A DNA stretch of 56,949 nt from assembly GCA_943704425.1 (NCBI GenBank), contig CALSCP010000121.1:1-56949 (forward strand), read 5' to 3'. Positions 2 to 30,696 of this stretch are shown here, piece by piece. Positions within the stretch are counted from its first letter, which is position 1. Each line of letters begins with the position of its first letter. This stretch comes from Ministeria vibrans ATCC 50519. Its lineage: Eukaryota > Protista > Filasterea. A program made the position numbers and the translations under genes. The notes under the pieces are model-generated. The model was given only the letters and a program-made list of their open reading frames with translations. It was not told the DNA's origin and ran no database searches.

Positions 2-3000
2 AAGAGCGTGGCGATTGCACGCGCAGGCGCAATTCAGCCGATTGTTGCGCTCCTTTTGGTTGGAACCGACAGCGCAAAAGAGAAGGCGGCGGAGACGCTG
101 CTCAACCTGTCTCACAACAAGGACAACGAAGTGGCCATTGCACGCGCAGGTGCAATTGAACCGCTGATTGCTGTGTTGCGCAGTGGAACCGACACCGCCA
201 AGGAGAAGGCAGCAAGTGCACTGTGGAGCCTGGCTGTCAACGACGACAACAAAGTCACCATTGCACACGCAGGTGCAATTCAACCGCTGATTGCTCTTTT
301 GCGCAGTGGAGCCGCCGGCGCCAAGGAGTACGCCGCGGGTGCGCTGAGGAATCTGGCTCGCAACAAGGACAACAGAGTGACCATTGCACTCGCAGGCGCA
401 ATTCAGCCGATTGTTGCGCTCCTTTTGGTTGGAACCGACAGCGCAAAAGAGAAGGCGGCGGAGACGCTGCTCAACCTGGCTCACAACAAAGACAACAGAG
501 TCACCATTGCACGCGCAGGTGCAATTGAACCGCTGATTGCTGTGTTGCGCAGTGGAACCGCCGGCGCCAAGGAGTACGCCGCCGGTGCGCTGGGGAACCT
601 GGCTCGCAACAAGGACAACCAAGTGACCATTGCACGCGCTGGTGCAATTGAACCGCTGATTGCTGTGTTGCGCAATGGAACCGACAGGGCCAAGGAGGAG
701 GCGGCCGGTGCGCTGTCCAACCTGGCTGTCAACGACGACAACCAAGTGGCCATTCCACGCGCAGGTGCAATTGAACCACTGATTGCTGTGTTGCGCAGTG
801 GAACCGACAGGGCCAAGGAGAAGGCGGCCGGTGCACTGTGGAGCCTGGCTGTCAACGACGACAACGAAGTGGCCATTGCACGCGCAGGTGCAATTGAACC
901 GCTGATTGCTGTGTTGCGCAATGGAACCGACAGCGCCAAGGAGTACGCGGCGGGTGCACTATCCAACCTGGCTGTCAACGACGACGACCAAGTCACCATT
1001 GCACGCGCAGGTGCAATTGAACCGCTGATTGCTGTGTTGCGCAATGGAACCGCCGGAGCCAAGGAGTACGCGGCGGGTGCGCTGTCCAACCTGGCTGTCA
1101 ATGACGACAACAAAGTGACCATTGCACGCGCAGATGCAATTGAACCGCTGATTGCTGTGTTGCGCAATGGAACCGACAGTGCCAAGGAGAAGGCGGCCGG
1201 TGCACTGTGGAACCTGGCTGTCAACGACGACAACCAAGGCACCATTGCACGCGCAGGTGCAATTGAACCGCTGATTGCTGTGTTGCGCAATGGAACCCGC
1301 AGCGCCAAGGAGAAGGCGGCCGGTACACTGTGGAGCCTGGCTCGCAACGACAACAACAAAGTCACCATTGCACGCGCAGGTGCAATTGAACCGCTGATTG
1401 TTGTTTTGCGCAGTGGAACCGCCGGAGCCAAGGAGTACGCGGCGGGTGCGCTGTCCAACCTGGCTGTCAACGACGACAACGAAGTGGCCATCGCACGCGC
1501 AGGTGCAATTGTACCGCTGATTGCTGTGTTGCGCAATGGAACCGACAGCGCCAAGGAGCACGCGGCGGGTGCGCTAGCCAATCTGGCGGGCAATGACGAC
1601 AACCAAGTGGCGATTGCACGCGCAGGTGCAATTGAACCGCTGATTGCTGTGTTGCGCAGTGGAACCGAGTGTGCCAAGGAGGAGGCGGCGGGTGCGCTAA
1701 GGAACCTGGCCATCAACGACAACAACGTCGTGGCCATTGCACGCGCAGGTGCAATTGAACCGCTGATTGCTGTGTTACGTAGTGGAACCGACAGCGCCAA
1801 GGAGTACGCCGCTGGTGCTCTGGGGAACCTCGCTGTCAGCGATGACATCCAAGTGGCCATTGCACGCGCAGGTGCAATTGAACCGCTGATTGCTGTGTTG
1901 CTCAGTGGAGCTGACAATGCCAAGGAGAGGGCGGCGGATACGCTGAGGATTCTGGCTCGCAACGACAACAACAAAGTCACCATTGCACGAGCAGGTGCAA
2001 TTGCCCCGCTGATTGCTGTGTTGCGCAGTGGAACCGACAGCGCCAAGGCGAACGCGGCGGGTGCACTATCCAACCTGGCTGTCAACGATGACAACGAGGT
2101 GACCATTGCACGTGCAGGTGCAATTAGACCGCTGATTGCTATGTTGCACAGTGGAACCGATAGTGCGAAGGAGAAGGCGGCAGGCGCGCTGTCCAACCTG
2201 GCGGTCAATGGCTACAACAAAATCACCATTGCACGCGCAGGTGCAATTGCCCCGCTGATTGCTTTGTTGCGCAGTGGAACCGACAGCGTCAAGGAGGAGG
2301 CGGCAGGTGCGCTCTCCAACCTGGCCGGCAACGATAACAATGAAGTGGACATTGCACGCGCCGGTGCAATTGTACCGCTGATTGCTGTGTTGCGCAGTGG
2401 AACTAACAGCGCCAAGGAGAAGGCCGCGGGTGCACTGTGGAACCTGGCCGTCAACATTCATAACAAGGTGTTAATTGCACGCGCAGGTGCAATTGAACCG
2501 ATGATTATTGTGTTGAGCAGTGGAACCGACAGCGCCAAGGAGTACGCCGCGGGCGCTCTGGCCAACTTGGCGGTCAACGGCGACAACAAAGTGACCATTG
2601 CACGTGCAGGTGCAATTGGACCGCTGATTGCCGTGTTGCGCAGTGGAGCCGACAGCGCTAAGGAGATGGCGGCGGGTGCGCTGTCCAACTTGGCGGGCAA
2701 TGACGACAACGAAGTGGCCATTGCACGCGCAGGTGCAATTGAACCGCTGATTGCTGTGTTACGCAGTGGAACCGCCGGCGCCAAGGAGAACGCCGCGGGT
2801 GCGCTGAGGAATCTGGCTGTCAACAAGCACAACAAAGTGGCCATTGCACGCGCAGGTGCAATTGAACCGCTGATTTCTCTTTTGTGCAGTGGAACCGACA
2901 GCGCGAAGGAGAAGGCGGCGGGTGCGTTGTCCAACCTGGCCGTCAACGTTAACGATGACAACAAAGTGGCTATTGCACGCGCAGGTGCAATTGGACCGCT

Positions 3001-3937
3001 GATTACCGTGCTGCGCTACGGAAGCGACAGCGCTAAGGAAAACGCGGCGGATGCGCTGTGCAGCTTGGCCCTCAACTACGACAACAAAGTGGCCATTGCA
3101 CGCGCAGGTGCGATTGAACCGTTGATTTCTCTGTTGCGCAGTGGAACTAACAGGGCCAAGGTGGTGGCGGCGGGTGCACTGAGGAACCTTGCTTTCAACG
3201 ACGACAATTACAACAAAGTCACCATTGCACGCGCAGGTGCAATTGAACCGCTGATTGCTGTGTTGCGCAGTGGAACCGACAGCGCCAAGGAGGAGGCGGC
3301 GTGTGCGCTGTCTAACCTGGCTGGCAACGACGACAACGAAGTGGCCATCGCACGCGCAGGTGCAATTGAACCGCTGATTGCTGTGTTGCGCAATGGAACC
3401 GACAGCGCCAAGGAAAAGGCGGCGGGTGCGCTGTCCAACCTGGCTGTCAACGACGACAACAAAGTGACCATTGCACGCGCAGGTGCGATTGAACCGCTGA
3501 TTGCTGTGCTGCGCAGTGGAACCGACAGCGCCAAGAAGAACGCGGCGGGTGCGCTGTCCAACCTGGCTGTCAACGACGACAATGAAGTGGCCATTGTACG
3601 TGCAGGTGCAATTGAACCGCTGATTGCTGTGTTGCGTAGCGGGATCGACAGCGCCAAGGACTACGCGGCGAGTGCGCTGAGGAACCTGGCGTTCAGCGAC
3701 GACGCCCAAGTGACCATCGCACGCTCAGGTGCGATTGAGGCAGCGGTGGCTCTTCTGAACAGTGAGAGTGCACCCGATCAGTCAAAAGAGACCATTGTGC
3801 GGCTCTTACTCCGATTGTCAAATGGCAATGGTATCAACAAGTCGGCCATCCAACAGAGTGGTGCCCTGGCCGCTCTGACCAACATGGCTATTGCAGGGTC
3901 CGCGTTAGCCAAGGAAGCTGTCATTCGTCTTCTTTGA
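2..3937 (+). CDS. Armadillo-repeat protein with about 30 near-identical 41-aa repeats plus a divergent C-terminal cap; 5' end lies outside the window
   Basis: The frame is open from base 2 to TGA at 3935-3937 with no intron. Repeat consensus IARAGAIEPLIAVLRSGTDSAKExAAGALxNLAxNDDNxV fits ARM helices H1-H3 with the conserved H3 Asn. Confidence 0.93.
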   Translation, partial: KSVAIARAGAIQPIVALLLVGTDSAKEKAAETLLNLSHNKDNEVAIARAGAIEPLIAVLRSGTDTAKEKAASALWSLAVNDDNKVTIAHAGAIQPLIALLRSGAAGAKEYAAGALRNLARNKDNRVTIALAGAIQPIVALLLVGTDSAKEKAAETLLNLAHNKDNRVTIARAGAIEPLIAVLRSGTAGAKEYAAGALGNLARNKDNQVTIARAGAIEPLIAVLRNGTDRAKEEAAGALSNLAVNDDNQVAIPRAGAIEPLIAVLRSGTDRAKEKAAGALWSLAVNDDNEVAIARAGAIEPLIAVLRNGTDSAKEYAAGALSNLAVNDDDQVTIARAGAIEPLIAVLRNGTAGAKEYAAGALSNLAVNDDNKVTIARADAIEPLIAVLRNGTDSAKEKAAGALWNLAVNDDNQGTIARAGAIEPLIAVLRNGTRSAKEKAAGTLWSLARNDNNKVTIARAGAIEPLIVVLRSGTAGAKEYAAGALSNLAVNDDNEVAIARAGAIVPLIAVLRNGTDSAKEHAAGALANLAGNDDNQVAIARAGAIEPLIAVLRSGTECAKEEAAGALRNLAINDNNVVAIARAGAIEPLIAVLRSGTDSAKEYAAGALGNLAVSDDIQVAIARAGAIEPLIAVLLSGADNAKERAADTLRILARNDNNKVTIARAGAIAPLIAVLRSGTDSAKANAAGALSNLAVNDDNEVTIARAGAIRPLIAMLHSGTDSAKEKAAGALSNLAVNGYNKITIARAGAIAPLIALLRSGTDSVKEEAAGALSNLAGNDNNEVDIARAGAIVPLIAVLRSGTNSAKEKAAGALWNLAVNIHNKVLIARAGAIEPMIIVLSSGTDSAKEYAAGALANLAVNGDNKVTIARAGAIGPLIAVLRSGADSAKEMAAGALSNLAGNDDNEVAIARAGAIEPLIAVLRSGTAGAKENAAGALRNLAVNKHNKVAIARAGAIEPLISLLCSGTDSAKEKAAGALSNLAVNVNDDNKVAIARAGAIGPLITVLRYGSDSAKENAADALCSLALNYDNKVAIARAGAIEPLISLLRSGTNRAKVVAAGALRNLAFNDDNYNKVTIARAGAIEPLIAVLRSGTDSAKEEAACALSNLAGNDDNEVAIARAGAIEPLIAVLRNGTDSAKEKAAGALSNLAVNDDNKVTIARAGAIEPLIAVLRSGTDSAKKNAAGALSNLAVNDDNEVAIVRAGAIEPLIAVLRSGIDSAKDYAASALRNLAFSDDAQVTIARSGAIEAAVALLNSESAPDQSKETIVRLLLRLSNGNGINKSAIQQSGALAALTNMAIAGSALAKEAVIRLL
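11..3720 (+). repeat. Coding tandem repeat, 123-bp unit, about 30 copies (two units carry 6-bp insertions)
   Basis: The block ccattgcacgcgcaggtgcaattgaaccgctgattgctgtgttgcgc recurs every 123 bp. Confidence 0.95.
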
Positions 3938-26207: not shown

Positions 26208-29113
26208 TTATTATTCTTATTCTGTTTCTTATTCTTATTCTTATTCTTATTCTTATTATAATTCTTATTATATTATTATTATTATTATTATTCTTATTCT
26301 GTTTCTTATTATATTATTATTATTATTCTTATTCTTATTATTATTCTTATAATATTACTTTCGGAAGGGATTTTCGACCAAGATACTCAATGACAGACTC
26401 GACAGAGAGCTCCTCTGGCATGACACGACCGCAAATGCTCAAGGCAGACACATCAATGCGCTGCTTGAGTTCAGTCGTGGTGGTGGCGACAGCAGCTGAG
26501 ATGAGATTGACGGCGTGCAGGCAGATGAAGCCTTGGTTGTAGTGGAACTGTCAAGTGATACAAAGTGGTTAATAGAAACAATAAAATCATTAAAATTATT
26601 ATTGTCTTTATAACGTATACCTGGAGGGACTTTGGCGCGGCGGGAACGTAGTCAATGGCACCGCAATGATGGCTGAGATGCGTGATGGCAAGGTCGACGG
26701 AGCGGAAAACGGTGGACATACTGAGGGGCGAAATGGCACCGGGAAGCATCTCACCAATGTTGCAGGTGGTGTTGTACTCGCGCGGCCACGAGCCGGGCGT
26801 GTCAAATTCGTGCATAACACGCTCGTCGGCCTCGAGAGACGTGATGGGCCGTGCCTGGAGCACATAAAGGACGCTATCGAGCAACGCAAACTCAATGTCG
26901 CGTGGCGACCCGAAAATGTGCTCAATGTGAACCGCGGCGCGAGCGAGACGCAACACTTCCTTGTCGGTGAGACAGAACTTGCGTGCATCGTCGGCACTTA
27001 CGCGGTGGCGCGACGTCCAGGCTGTAACGTCGACGAGTGGCGCTGGTGCGGCCGACTCACCCTGCTGCAGACGTGTCGAGCGTCGACGTGTCGTGTCGGA
27101 AGAAGTGGAATCCGTCGCGGTGGGCGTGTGCTTGATGGCATCAACACGCATCTGTTTGGTGCCCAAAGAACGCTGCACAATATCAAAGGTAGCGTCGTCG
27201 CGTGCAACCACAAAGGTGTCAGGATCAACGGAACCGTCGACGACAGACTCGCCCAGACCATAGTTGGCGGTGAGCACAATACGCGAGCGATCGTTACGCA
27301 GAGGGTCGGCGGTGAAAAGCACACCTGCAACGCGCGACGACACAAGCAACTGTACAGCAACACCAATGCGTGGTGTCTCAACTGCGCCGCTGGTTGCATC
27401 CTCTGTTGCTGCTGCGTCAAGACCCCTCTGAGCACGGTAGTTGGTGGCACGCACACTGAAGACGGACGCCCAGCAGCGCATCACGGCACGCGTCACTTCT
27501 TCGACACCGCACACGCCCAAAAAGGTCTCGTTCTGACCGGCCGACGAGGAGTCTTGCGTGTCCTCCGACGCGGCCGACGAGCGCACAGCAACCATAGGAC
27601 TGGTTGAAGCGGCGCCTGAGCGCTTGGCCAGTGCAACATAGGCATCACGAATGGCCTGCGCCACTGGTACGTGCATTGCTGCGCTCTCGTAGACGTGAGC
27701 GAGTTCGGCGGCCGTGTCTTCGCGCACCGCACCCGAGATGGGGTCATGAAGATGAAGCAGCAGCTTAAGAATACGTTGGCCAGCCTCGCTCTCGCTCAGA
27801 TGCAGCTCGTGCGCAGCAAAGGTAATGCAAAAGCCATCAGGAATGGAAAAAGAGGCGTCGTCGTCGTCGGTGGATTTTTGCTTTGTGTTGCGTGTGCGAG
27901 TACGCAGATGGGCGGTCAGCAAGGAGAGCTGCTGGCATTTTGAGCCGACCTGAGAAAGATCAGAGGCATCATTGTCGCCAAAGGGTGCCACAAGACACGG
28001 CGAGGACAAAGAGGAAGCGACAGGGCGAGTGGAGGAGGAGACCGAAGAAGGGTGTTTGAGGAGAACCCCGGCGCCGCCAAGTGACGGACCTTGACCGCGG
28101 TGTACGAGAACGGAGACTGCGGTGAAGGGCGACTGGTTGGTGTTGCCAGTGAGGGTTGCCGAGACGAGCAGATCACCGTCGATGCAGACGCCCAGGTCGG
28201 CGCGACTGGCGTAGTCGGAGACACTCGCAAGGTGAGGTAGGCCGCTGGGACGCCAGACAAACGCGGTGCGGTCCGCTGCTGTAGGACGCAGCCAGGAGGG
28301 CATGGAGCCCGAGGAGGGTTGTGAGAGGAGCGCAACGCCCAAGTGGTTATCGAGATAAAGTCCGAGAGTTGTCAGAAGCGAATGGGCGTCCACTGTGGGA
28401 CGGCGGAGTCGTTGGCGCAGTGAACGTGCCTTTACTGTGTAGACGAATCCATTGACGGTGACCGTGCCAAGCAGGTGGCCCCACTGCAGCACTTGCTCGG
28501 TCTGTGCGACGTCCATGCGCAGACGATGTTGTCGCGATGCATCACGCTCGACAATGACGGCATCACCATAGGCAACCCATCGCAGACGCGCCGACACGCG
28601 CGCCTGCTGAGACTCCTTGAGCAGACAGGCACGCTCCTCGCAGCTGGGCGGTGTCGACGAGGGCGCCACGACGGTCGCAAGCGAGTCATCAACGGCGACC
28701 TGCCAGCGCGTCATGGGCTCGAGACAAGTCGCCGAGAAAGACGACGCACGCAGCACGGACGCGACAGTGTCGTCCTCGCGGTGTTCGCCGTCCCCTTCGC
28801 TGCTGATGATCAAGTCGACAGGCGGATTGGCTGGCACTGTGAATCGAAAGGACGCTGAGCTGCTCCCCTGCGCATTGTCGATTGAGATCGCCAGCCCCTG
28901 CGCCGAAAACGCCACGCTGTCGCATCCAATACGATCCACACGATCCTGGTGGGCCCACAGACGAAACAGATCGTGTGTGCGAAGCTCAGCACGGCCGGGG
29001 CGACGAGAGTAAATAAGCGAATACAAAGCGACCGCAATTGAACGCCACCGGAACAAAAGGGCAAGACTGACAACGCCAATCACTGCCGCCCAAAGCAGTT
29101 CCACTGGATCCAT
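24553..29113 (-). CDS. PEP-utilising enzyme with rifampicin phosphotransferase/PigC architecture (N-terminal TM + unknown domain, ATP-grasp, central domain, phospho-His swivel domain), 3 introns
   Basis: VGSKCQQL, IPDGFCIT, VAVRSSAASED...SAGQNETFLG, AGVLFTADP, ANYGLGESVVDG, DIEFA, LQARPIT, YGHRCIRESEL. Last exon TDIGWTPLF...GGLLSHGAVVAREYGIPCVV ends at TAG 24555-24553. Confidence 0.87.
26071..26356. repeat. Intronic (TAT)n/(TATTCT)n microsatellite
   Basis: AT-rich simple repeat inside a GT-AG intron of the minus-strand PEP-utilising gene. Confidence 0.93.
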
Positions 29114-29206
29114 CTTGGTGACAACGAAGTAAGTCAAAAAAAGTCAATTCGGACTCAAGTAAAATTAATAGTAAATTTCAACATTTTTCAGCTTCTCTCC
29201 CACAAA

Positions 29207-30486
29207 ATGAAGCTTTGCATTGTTCTCGCTCTCTGTGTTGCCGGCGCCTTTGCTGCCCCCAAGTGCGACGTCAAGGACTTCGCCGCCATGGCCTCCAACT
29301 ACTGGTAATGTCTCTTTCTCACCAAAAGTGCCTTTTTCATCGCCGTTCGCTTGCTTTCGCGCCCAATTCCGTCTTTTATGAGCACCCCCTGCTGTGTTGG
29401 AGGTGTTTCCGGTCCATTCGTCCACCGGTGGCTTATTTCTCTTGTTTTTTGTCGTTTTTTTTTTCTTCGTTTTCTTCTTTTCTCCTTTCCATCGCGGTTG
29501 TTTCGTCGATTTGGCCGATGCGCACACTTTGTCGTGGTGTACAATAGATGTTAGGACGCATTGGAAGTGTCGCAGTGACTCGCAGGCGCCTCCTTCATGG
29601 TGAACTTGGTGTGTGTCATCCAAAGTGCATAGCAAAAAAATAAAACAACAACAACAACAACAACTTCCGACTGCTCGCTCCGCTGGGGCTAGCCTAAGGT
29701 GGTGTGTTTTTGCGCATGCGTGCTATTGCTGCCCTCCCTTCATCACATATTGTTGTTTATTTTTCTCACTTAATTTTTATATTAATTATGTTTTCTCCCT
29801 TTCCACTTTCGCTCTTCAGGGTCCGCCAGGTTGGTCCGGTACGCAACGCGAATGCATCATTATGACCCCTCCATCACCTCGTCCTCACCGCCCTGTCTCT
29901 TGTTCTCTCCTTTGGGTTTTCGTCATAGGCTTCCGATCTGACAGCGTTCAACACGGAAGACACATTCACCGGCTCGTTTGGCGCCACCAAGATGGGCATG
30001 CTCACTGGCGATCAGTACATGTCGGGCGGTCTCCAGATGCAGAAGTGTGGTTTTGCCAAGACTTTTGGCGCTGATCTTGAGGGAGCTGTGCAGTACCTCA
30101 ACGAGCTGTCGGGTCAGACTTTCGAGTCGCTTGAGAAGTTTCAGAAGTGCGCTATGGACAAGGACTGCGACGAGGCGATTGCCTCTGACCCTGCTCTTGT
30201 GGGCCACAACGTGACCGTTGTCAACGTGAACCGCATCATCGACGGCCTCAAGACTGTCCGCTGCCACTTCCACGAGACCGGCTCGTGGTGCCACAGCAAG
30301 GTCAAGGAGTTCAACATGGGTACCTTTTACCTGGCCGACGTGACCATTGACGGCGACGAGACCAAGACGCTCCACCAGGGTCTCTTTATGTGCCACGAGT
30401 TCTCCAACGAGCACAAGGAGATGTTCCTCGCGCGTGACACCAAGTGCCACACCATGCCCAAGGGTGTTGCTGTTCTCCTTAAGTAA
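29207..30486 (+). CDS. Secreted ~224-aa BURP-domain-like protein (four Cys-His dyads; putative copper-dependent peptide cyclase); exons 29207-29304, 29820-29838, 29929-30486
   Basis: Signal peptide MKLCIVLALCVAGAFA. C-terminus reads CH-x7-CH-x32-CH-x16-CH, and YLADVTIDGDETKTLHQGLFMCH resembles the plant BURP segment before the third CH. Strong C/G-ending codon bias. The splice phases require the microexon. Confidence 0.7.
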
Positions 30487-30499
30487 ACAAACGTGTTGT

Positions 30500-30696
30500 T
30501 TGTTTCACTTGAAGTACACGTGTGTGGGGTGCGCTGGTGTTTAGTAGGATGCGGTGAGCGAAAGAGCGGTCAGGTACTGCGTGCAGGCGCAAATGTGTTG
30601 TTTCACTTGAAGTACACGTGTGTGGGGTGCGCTGGTGTTTAGTAGGATGCGGTGAGACGGGCATCGGAAGAGCGGTCGGGCACTGCAGCAGGCGCA
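30500..30696. repeat. 98-bp-period tandem duplication covering the stop codon and 3' flank of the DUF218 gene
   Basis: ttgtttcacttgaagtacacgtgtgtggggtgcgctggtgtttagtaggatgcggtgag is identical at 30500-30558 and 30598-30656; the following ~35 bp are similar but diverged. Confidence 0.92.

Follow-up and report, generated by a model that had tools for sequence, protein, structure and literature searches.

The last exon of a gene of Ministeria vibrans ATCC 50519, a non-plant microbial eukaryote, encodes a 185-residue region that we consider very likely to adopt the BURP fold, with about 140 to 150 residues of the predicted model aligning structurally. In the structure searches the model matched significantly only AhyBURP, a USP-type BURP-domain peptide cyclase of peanut (PDB 8SY2, apo, and 8SY3, the Cu complex). 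The protein also carries the four Cys-His (CH) dyads and the two further cysteines of that family, and upstream of them a short Tyr-Trp unit that is repeated in several relatives. Taken as a whole, our explanation is that of a remote non-plant BURP-fold protein in which two stapled bis-His copper sites would cross-link an aromatic residue of the protein's own N-terminal part; arguing from the plant enzymes, we see the chances of this complete picture as evenly balanced.

The gene and its transcript

The window, that is, the whole stretch of DNA analyzed, comprises positions 1 to 56,949 of the forward strand of contig CALSCP010000121.1 (assembly GCA_943704425.1). Sequence reading and a script gave a three-exon gene on the + strand (29207-29304, 29820-29838, and 29929-30486), with 675 nt corresponding to 224 codons and a stop. 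Exon 1 (29207-29304) contains the start codon, the signal peptide (residues 1 to 17), and the first part of the N-terminal unit (..DFAAMASNYW), whose Trp codon is split TG|G at the junction with exon 2. Intron 1 (29305-29819; 515 nt, GTAATG..CTTCAG) is of the GT..AG type and is marked by the joints of RNA contigs, and the first junction (29303/4 to 29819/20) was present in all 4 runs aligned. Exon 2 (29820-29838) is a microexon of 19 nt that encodes (W)VRQVGP, the center of the Tyr-Trp unit; it was recognized from contig pieces 29819-29837, which in record 18 of run X9 and record 9 of run X11 are flanked by the pieces of exons 1 and 3. After intron 2 (29839-29928; 90 nt, GT..AG, GTACGC..TCATAG), exon 3 (29929-30486) supplies 185 codons and the TAA, and it encodes the last residues of the unit (ASDL) together with the entire predicted BURP-fold domain.

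The untranslated regions, likewise on the + strand, are short. The 5' UTR is placed at 29180-29206, the transcript start being approximate, since RNA-type contigs begin at 29180-29192, and the 3' UTR extends over 30487-30513 to the poly(A) site, with contigs ending at 30507-30513 and a poly(A) loose end after 30513 in run X1. All three exons are joined with zero mismatch in the X9 record (721 nt) and the X11 record (714 nt), which come from two different studies. The original prediction of a spliced gene for a protein of about 224 residues was therefore confirmed by RNA contigs from independent studies, which give three exons and 224 codons. Contig depth, a poor measure of expression, was about 6,800 over the exons in X1 versus about 70 for both neighboring genes, and about 1,600 to 3,400 in X5 versus 8 for the neighbors. 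The gene is clearly expressed, and probably strongly so.

Beyond the stop codon, the DNA contains a perfect 59-nt direct repeat (30500-30558 and 30598-30656), followed by a 29-nt stretch of 79% identity (30552-30580 and 30658-30686). This tandem duplication, located in the spacer before the convergent downstream gene, takes in the last part of the 3' UTR together with the poly(A) region, and the transcripts stop in its first copy.

Read by eye, the signal peptide in exon 1 follows the classic pattern (MK, a hydrophobic core, and AFA|AP), and the 224-residue protein is probably secreted. An N-x-T sequon (GHNVTV, 30208-30216, +), whose G-x-N-x-T has a near-invariant G and T in alignment A4, is consistent with passage through the secretory pathway and putative glycosylation.

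Conserved Cys-His dyads in a protist family

A full HMMER scan of 1.84 billion representative sequences recovered 15 relatives, with P0001 (224 aa, E 3e-43, 46% identity) as the best match, and profile searches added P0016 to P0020, P0028, and P0029. A word-indexed search with exon 3 alone returned no match, so the full HMMER scan was needed to reach the family. One member comes from Mucochytrium quahogii, a thraustochytrid stramenopile, another from an EST set in EukProt, and one from a fragmented NCBI assembly, while the remaining members are from metatranscriptome or run assemblies. None of the members has a Pfam domain or a functional name, and two short family patterns found no prokaryotic relatives in 185,579 genomes. 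Judged by these searches, which included the protist homologue search that the original prediction had proposed, the relatives form a small protist family without annotation, to which the protein belongs and of which at least one member is from a thraustochytrid.

Several members carry additional segments. A weak Pfam match to Toxin_12 (E 0.013) in one member was taken as the knottin-like Cys-rich tail of what is presumably P0006; P0002 and P0028 have a Cys-rich spacer of about 65 aa between repeat units; and P0002, P0007, P0009, P0028, and P0029 share a short C-terminal extension (..FCAxHDCRAAWT..).

The conserved core of the family lies in the CH region (residues below are numbered within exon 3; all sites are on the + strand). 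Dyad 1 is R-C112-H113, followed by H115 (30262-30267), and its R-C-H is invariant in alignment A4; dyad 2 is W-C121-H122 (30289-30294), dyad 3 is M154-C155-H156 (30391-30396), and dyad 4 is C173-H174-T-M176-P (30445-30450). Our script recovered exactly the four dyads of the original prediction, with Cys codons at 30262, 30289, 30391, and 30445 and a spacing of CH-x7-CH-x32-CH-x16-CH. In 200,000 shuffles of 185 residues with 7 Cys and 8 His, the chance of at least four CH dyads was 4e-5. The R-C-H and the three other C-H pairs are the sole invariant residues among 14 members, with identities down to 18 to 25%, and none of the full-length homologues found departs from the four dyads. In the close subgroup (alignment A5), H115, W120, M154, T175, M176, and P177 are invariant as well. 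Two further cysteines upstream of the dyads, C74 and C80 (C-x5-C, 30148-30168), are conserved in at least 90% of A4.

The BURP domain has been defined by two Cys and four CH in the arrangement CHX10CHX23-27CHX23-26CHX8W (PMC6102523). The four conserved C-terminal dyads (exon 3 residues 112, 121, 155, and 173) and the two additional conserved Cys upstream of them are both present in the window protein, so at the level of sequence motifs the conserved core of the family corresponds to the BURP hallmark in count and order, but the spacers differ. The window protein, with x7, x32, and x16, does not match the published spacing, and the Trp at +8 after dyad 4 is absent. Across the family, the spacers are x7-9, x29-38, and x15-34 (the third x15-26 in all members but one), and those of a distant subgroup (x9, x32-34, and x25-26) come nearest to the published consensus.

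Beyond this motif, the sequence searches gave no link to BURP proteins. The Pfam scan against PF03181 suggested with the original prediction came back negative: at E<=10, hmmscan of exon 3, exon 1, and 19 family members gave no BURP match, just scattered chance matches, and the protein stays below the PF03181 gathering score of 27 bits. Searches with the family profile at E<=10, over 8,000 scored candidates, returned family members only and no plant BURP protein. Phmmer and hmmsearch runs against PDB sequences (exon 3, profiles A2 and A4, and P0019) produced nothing relevant, exon 3 matching designed helical proteins only, and ESM Atlas look-ups with exon 3 and P0001 gave no usable match. A six-frame scan of the genome with PF03181 found nothing at the gene (29207-30486). 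The sole genomic match of that scan (G000:C1078:26512-26625, 14.7 bits, E 0.26) was judged to be due to chance; its frame is short, looks non-coding, contains two CH dyads, and stands beside a ribosomal-protein gene.

The Tyr-Trp unit and the proposed chemistry

The order of parts in the protein, namely, a signal peptide, a variable or repeat region, and a C-terminal CH domain, is that of BURP proteins. Upstream of the domain lies a unit of about 23 aa (..MAxxYWVRQVGPxDD..), which occurs in 1 to 4 copies in the relatives. The window protein has one (..DFAAMASNYW|VRQVGP|ASDL..), split over all three exons, and the unit is conserved in P0001, P0003, P0005, and P0006. P0002 has three copies, seen in six independent metatranscriptome sequences; P0028 has two copies around the Cys-rich spacer, and P0029 has two tandem copies. 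In the metatranscriptome contig of P0029 (L005:76-577), two more upstream copies stand in another frame, giving four recognizable copies in all; a frameshift, a retained intron, or an assembly artifact may account for the out-of-frame copies, and the true count may be four. On the genomic contig L004, two copies form separate exons. These two copies differ by 10 synonymous and 2 non-synonymous codons of 23, so the peptide sequence itself is under purifying selection, and in L006 the amino acid differences are confined to the edges of the unit.

Plant "fused" burpitide precursors carry one to many Tyr/Trp cores before the BURP domain in the same open reading frame, and these are cross-linked in cis. 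SkrBURP, with four VLFYPSY cores, and the lyciumin and moroidin precursors have repeated aromatic units N-terminal to the CH domain, as do the relatives of the window protein with 2 to 4 units. In contrast to those precursors, the window gene has a single unit that is split over three exons by the 19-nt microexon, and the unit of about 23 aa centered on YWVRQVGP resembles no known core peptide. We regard the N-terminal YW unit as the best candidate for the substrate. Going by the aligned ranges of the superposition, the first 30 or so residues of exon 3, with a conserved segment (..SFGATKMGMLTGDQY..), lie roughly opposite the AhyBURP core peptide (residues 79 to 86), and the YW unit does not. 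The position of the SFGATKMGMLTGDQY segment, in place of the unit, makes the identity of the substrate segment uncertain.

In AhyBURP, the CH cysteines staple each histidine pair, which has Met residues at its side (PMC12164859), and the mechanism we propose is drawn by analogy with this peanut protein. The cysteines of dyads 1 and 2 and those of dyads 3 and 4 would form two disulfide staples, each of which would hold a His pair toward the cleft and thereby create two Cu(His)2 sites, with Met154 and Met176 flanking the second. With O2, the copper sites would oxidatively cross-link a Tyr or Trp side chain in the same polypeptide. The putative target is the ..MASNYWVRQVGPxDD.. unit, present once here and 2 to 4 times in relatives, and the protein would then be a "fused" burpitide-type precursor. 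A parallel to the CuM site of peptidylglycine alpha-hydroxylating monooxygenase (PHM), which is of the His2Met type with a disulfide staple, has been noted for AhyBURP (PMC12164859); the M-C-H and C-H-T-M contexts of the window protein would fit this parallel, and the PHM fold is unrelated. On these analogies, a copper site at the CH histidines is somewhat more probable than its absence, and copper-dependent self-cyclization of the precursor is plausible but tentative, being somewhat less likely than not.

The same features could belong to a secreted protein that has the BURP fold but no peptide cyclase activity, such as a metal-binding, matrix, or cell-surface protein, in which the unit would serve as a structural element, a pro-segment, a sorting signal, or an interaction motif. 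The fold and the CH hallmark also fit such a protein, which would resemble the many plant BURP proteins that have no known enzymatic function. To our knowledge, indeed, most of them lack a known cyclase activity, so the fold is no proof of chemistry, and a review advises keeping "burpitide cyclases" apart from BURP domains whose function is unknown. Modeled in P0001, the unit is helical in part (pLDDT 75 to 93), so that it may pack against the domain. Members of the distant subgroup (P0011, P0012, and P0016 to P0020) have kept the four CH and are without the YW unit. A search of the genome with a degenerate DNA pattern found no contiguous YWVRQVGP elsewhere and, with it, no sign of split, stand-alone precursors. 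A non-cyclase function is, however, hard to reconcile with 1 to 4 copies of a short, constrained Tyr/Trp unit immediately before the domain, which are difficult to explain structurally and typical of multi-core RiPP precursors, and the conserved Met beside dyads 3 and 4 speaks more for a redox-active copper site than for simple storage of metal. We take a BURP-fold protein without cyclase activity as a distinct possibility.

Predicted fold, host genome, and significance

An AlphaFold2 model of exon 3, built from 19 sequences of the protist family only, with no plant sequence and no templates, reached a pLDDT of 88.3 and a pTM of 0.83. Among 350,542 PDB chains searched with Foldseek, the only matches at E<=1e-3 were the four AhyBURP chains of 8SY2 and 8SY3 (E 1e-4, probability 0.99 to 1.0; TM 0.43 to 0.46 for the best-superposed chains, rmsd about 4.5 Å over about 160 columns, 16 to 18% identity), and the next match, at rank 5, had an E of 0.2 and a probability of 0.03. 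VIA-align run on the Foldseek list gave Z scores of 9.1 (rmsd 3.5 Å, 140 aligned) and 8.9 (rmsd 3.5 Å, 148 aligned) for AhyBURP, with residues 1 to 185 of the model aligned to 55 to 242 of the chain and the next match at Z 3.7. When 48,161 representative chains were searched without recourse to Foldseek, 8sy2_A was the sole chain with Z>=5 (Z 8.3, rmsd 3.3 Å, 139 aligned), although a best Z of 7 to 8 is typical also of models without clear relatives, according to the search tool's own note; the runner-up had Z 4.5 with 60 aligned. A separate model of the full-length homologue P0001 (41% identical; pLDDT 88.6), which stood in for the joined 224-residue protein, found the same unique match, with Z 8.8, an rmsd of 3.8 Å, and 150 aligned residues (model 36 to 224 versus chain 51 to 242). 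[quoted passage not shown] The comparison with plant BURP structures foreseen in the original prediction accordingly ended in a single significant match, 8SY2/8SY3, over the whole domain.

In the model, strands 109 to 115 and 118 to 122 form a hairpin that carries dyad 1 on the one strand and dyad 2 on the other, strand 149 to 156 ends in dyad 3, and dyad 4 is on 173 to 175. In the plant enzymes, dyads 1 and 2 pair as HH-A and dyads 3 and 4 as HH-B (PMC12186524), and the modeled strand positions agree, indirectly, with this pairing.

The likeness to AhyBURP (Z 8.3 to 9.1 across the searches) extends beyond the fold. Both proteins possess a signal peptide, four CH dyads, and two Cys, with Met near the His sites, and stop 11 to 16 residues past the last CH; in both, a conserved Tyr/Trp-containing segment precedes the CH region within the one polypeptide. 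They differ in that the window protein has no detectable sequence or profile similarity to AhyBURP, with 13 to 18% identity in the superposition, and in that its first and third CH spacers are shorter (x7 and x16), its second is longer (x32), and the terminal Trp is missing. Compared with the PF03181 model, the window domain is about 40 residues shorter. Unlike AhyBURP, the protein belongs to a non-plant microbial eukaryote, and its copper or cyclase role is putative.

A structural match of this kind could also arise if the protein were an unrelated, lineage-specific, Cys-rich secreted protein, whose CH pairs would be disulfide cysteines with incidental or independently evolved His and whose likeness to 8SY2 would reflect a common beta arrangement, with no shared ancestry or mechanism. 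Such convergence would account for the lack of any sequence or profile signal to BURP and for the deviating CH spacing, and it would suit the weak points of the match, namely, a TM below 0.5, an rmsd of 3.3 to 4.6 Å, a structural identity of 13 to 18%, and the best Z of 7 to 8 that models without clear relatives also typically reach. However, the AhyBURP fold has been described as unique among experimentally solved folds (PMC11253845), which makes a chance match to exactly this fold, over the whole domain, unlikely. In the Foldseek-independent search, AhyBURP stood 4 to 5 Z units above everything else, and the second, independently built model led to the same match. The match coincides, moreover, with a rare conserved motif (four CH and two Cys) and with the same order of parts. 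The alignment given to AlphaFold2 held neither plant sequences nor templates, and 8SY2 was released only in 2024; this date and the uniqueness of the fold together leave the shared fold well supported. Convergence is therefore improbable in our assessment, and descent of the BURP-fold domain from a common ancestor with plant BURP proteins is likely.

Of the claim that the protein is a divergent BURP, the predicted fold and the four CH with two Cys were upheld, and the Pfam profile, the CH spacing, and the terminal Trp were not. The protein is a variant outside PF03181 membership: because it fails the Pfam profile and the spacing, and agrees in fold, motif count, additional cysteines, and domain order, we did not file it in PF03181.

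Contamination with plant DNA, or a plant BURP gene acquired by very recent transfer, has only the motif resemblance in its favor and is extremely improbable, and contamination is refuted by genomic context and splicing, as the original prediction had argued: the gene is transcribed, spliced, and polyadenylated in runs containing the Ministeria organism, it stands as a single copy midway along a 57-kb contig of the host assembly (29.7 Mb), its homologues come from a thraustochytrid, a EukProt EST set, and unlabeled metatranscriptome or run assemblies, and plant BURP proteins are undetectable from it by sequence. The genome search found no second family member in the assembly. An ancient transfer of a BURP gene is possible.

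The spliced transcript or the locus was also found in public runs X1 to X20, which carry nine coded organism labels from 12 studies, and 2 of the 4 runs aligned showed zero mismatch over 714 to 721 nt. Because the transcript occurs without mismatch in runs under other organism labels, it seems that Ministeria or a near-identical strain occurs, whether as a culture companion, a parasite, or a contaminant, in samples that bear other names.

The upstream divergent neighbor (window 26474-29137, - strand) is an 888-aa open frame with a PPDK_N domain at residues 397 to 772, and the convergent downstream neighbor encodes a DUF218 protein. PPDK_N is a PEP-utilizing, ATP-binding domain, and the N-terminal 390 or so residues of that neighbor have no Pfam match. 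Since neither neighbor has a tie to BURP biology, a biosynthetic cluster is unsupported, and the idea was dropped.

BURP proteins have repeatedly been called plant-specific; they are said to be missing from green algae too and to date from the time when plants colonized the land (PMC6102523, PMC9121072). An incomplete full-text literature search found no report of BURP proteins or burpitides in stramenopiles, algae, or other non-plants. The copper-dependent peptide cyclase chemistry of BURP proteins was discovered only in 2022 to 2024. By analogy with the plant systems, similar peptide chemistry may exist outside plants. If our explanation is true, the origin of the BURP fold would be pushed far back or an old transfer would be revealed, RiPP chemists would gain new candidate cores and a minimal scaffold of about 185 aa, and an abundant orphan transcript would be explained. 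There is a distinct possibility, as a tentative extension, that a heterotrophic protist lineage of thraustochytrid-like stramenopiles and relatives makes burpitide-type cross-linked ribosomal peptides from self-processing precursors, with an ancient, diverged BURP fold and cores of the YWVRQVGP type. It would be the first pathway of its kind beyond the land plants, and it would overturn the view that BURP proteins originated with the move of plants onto land.
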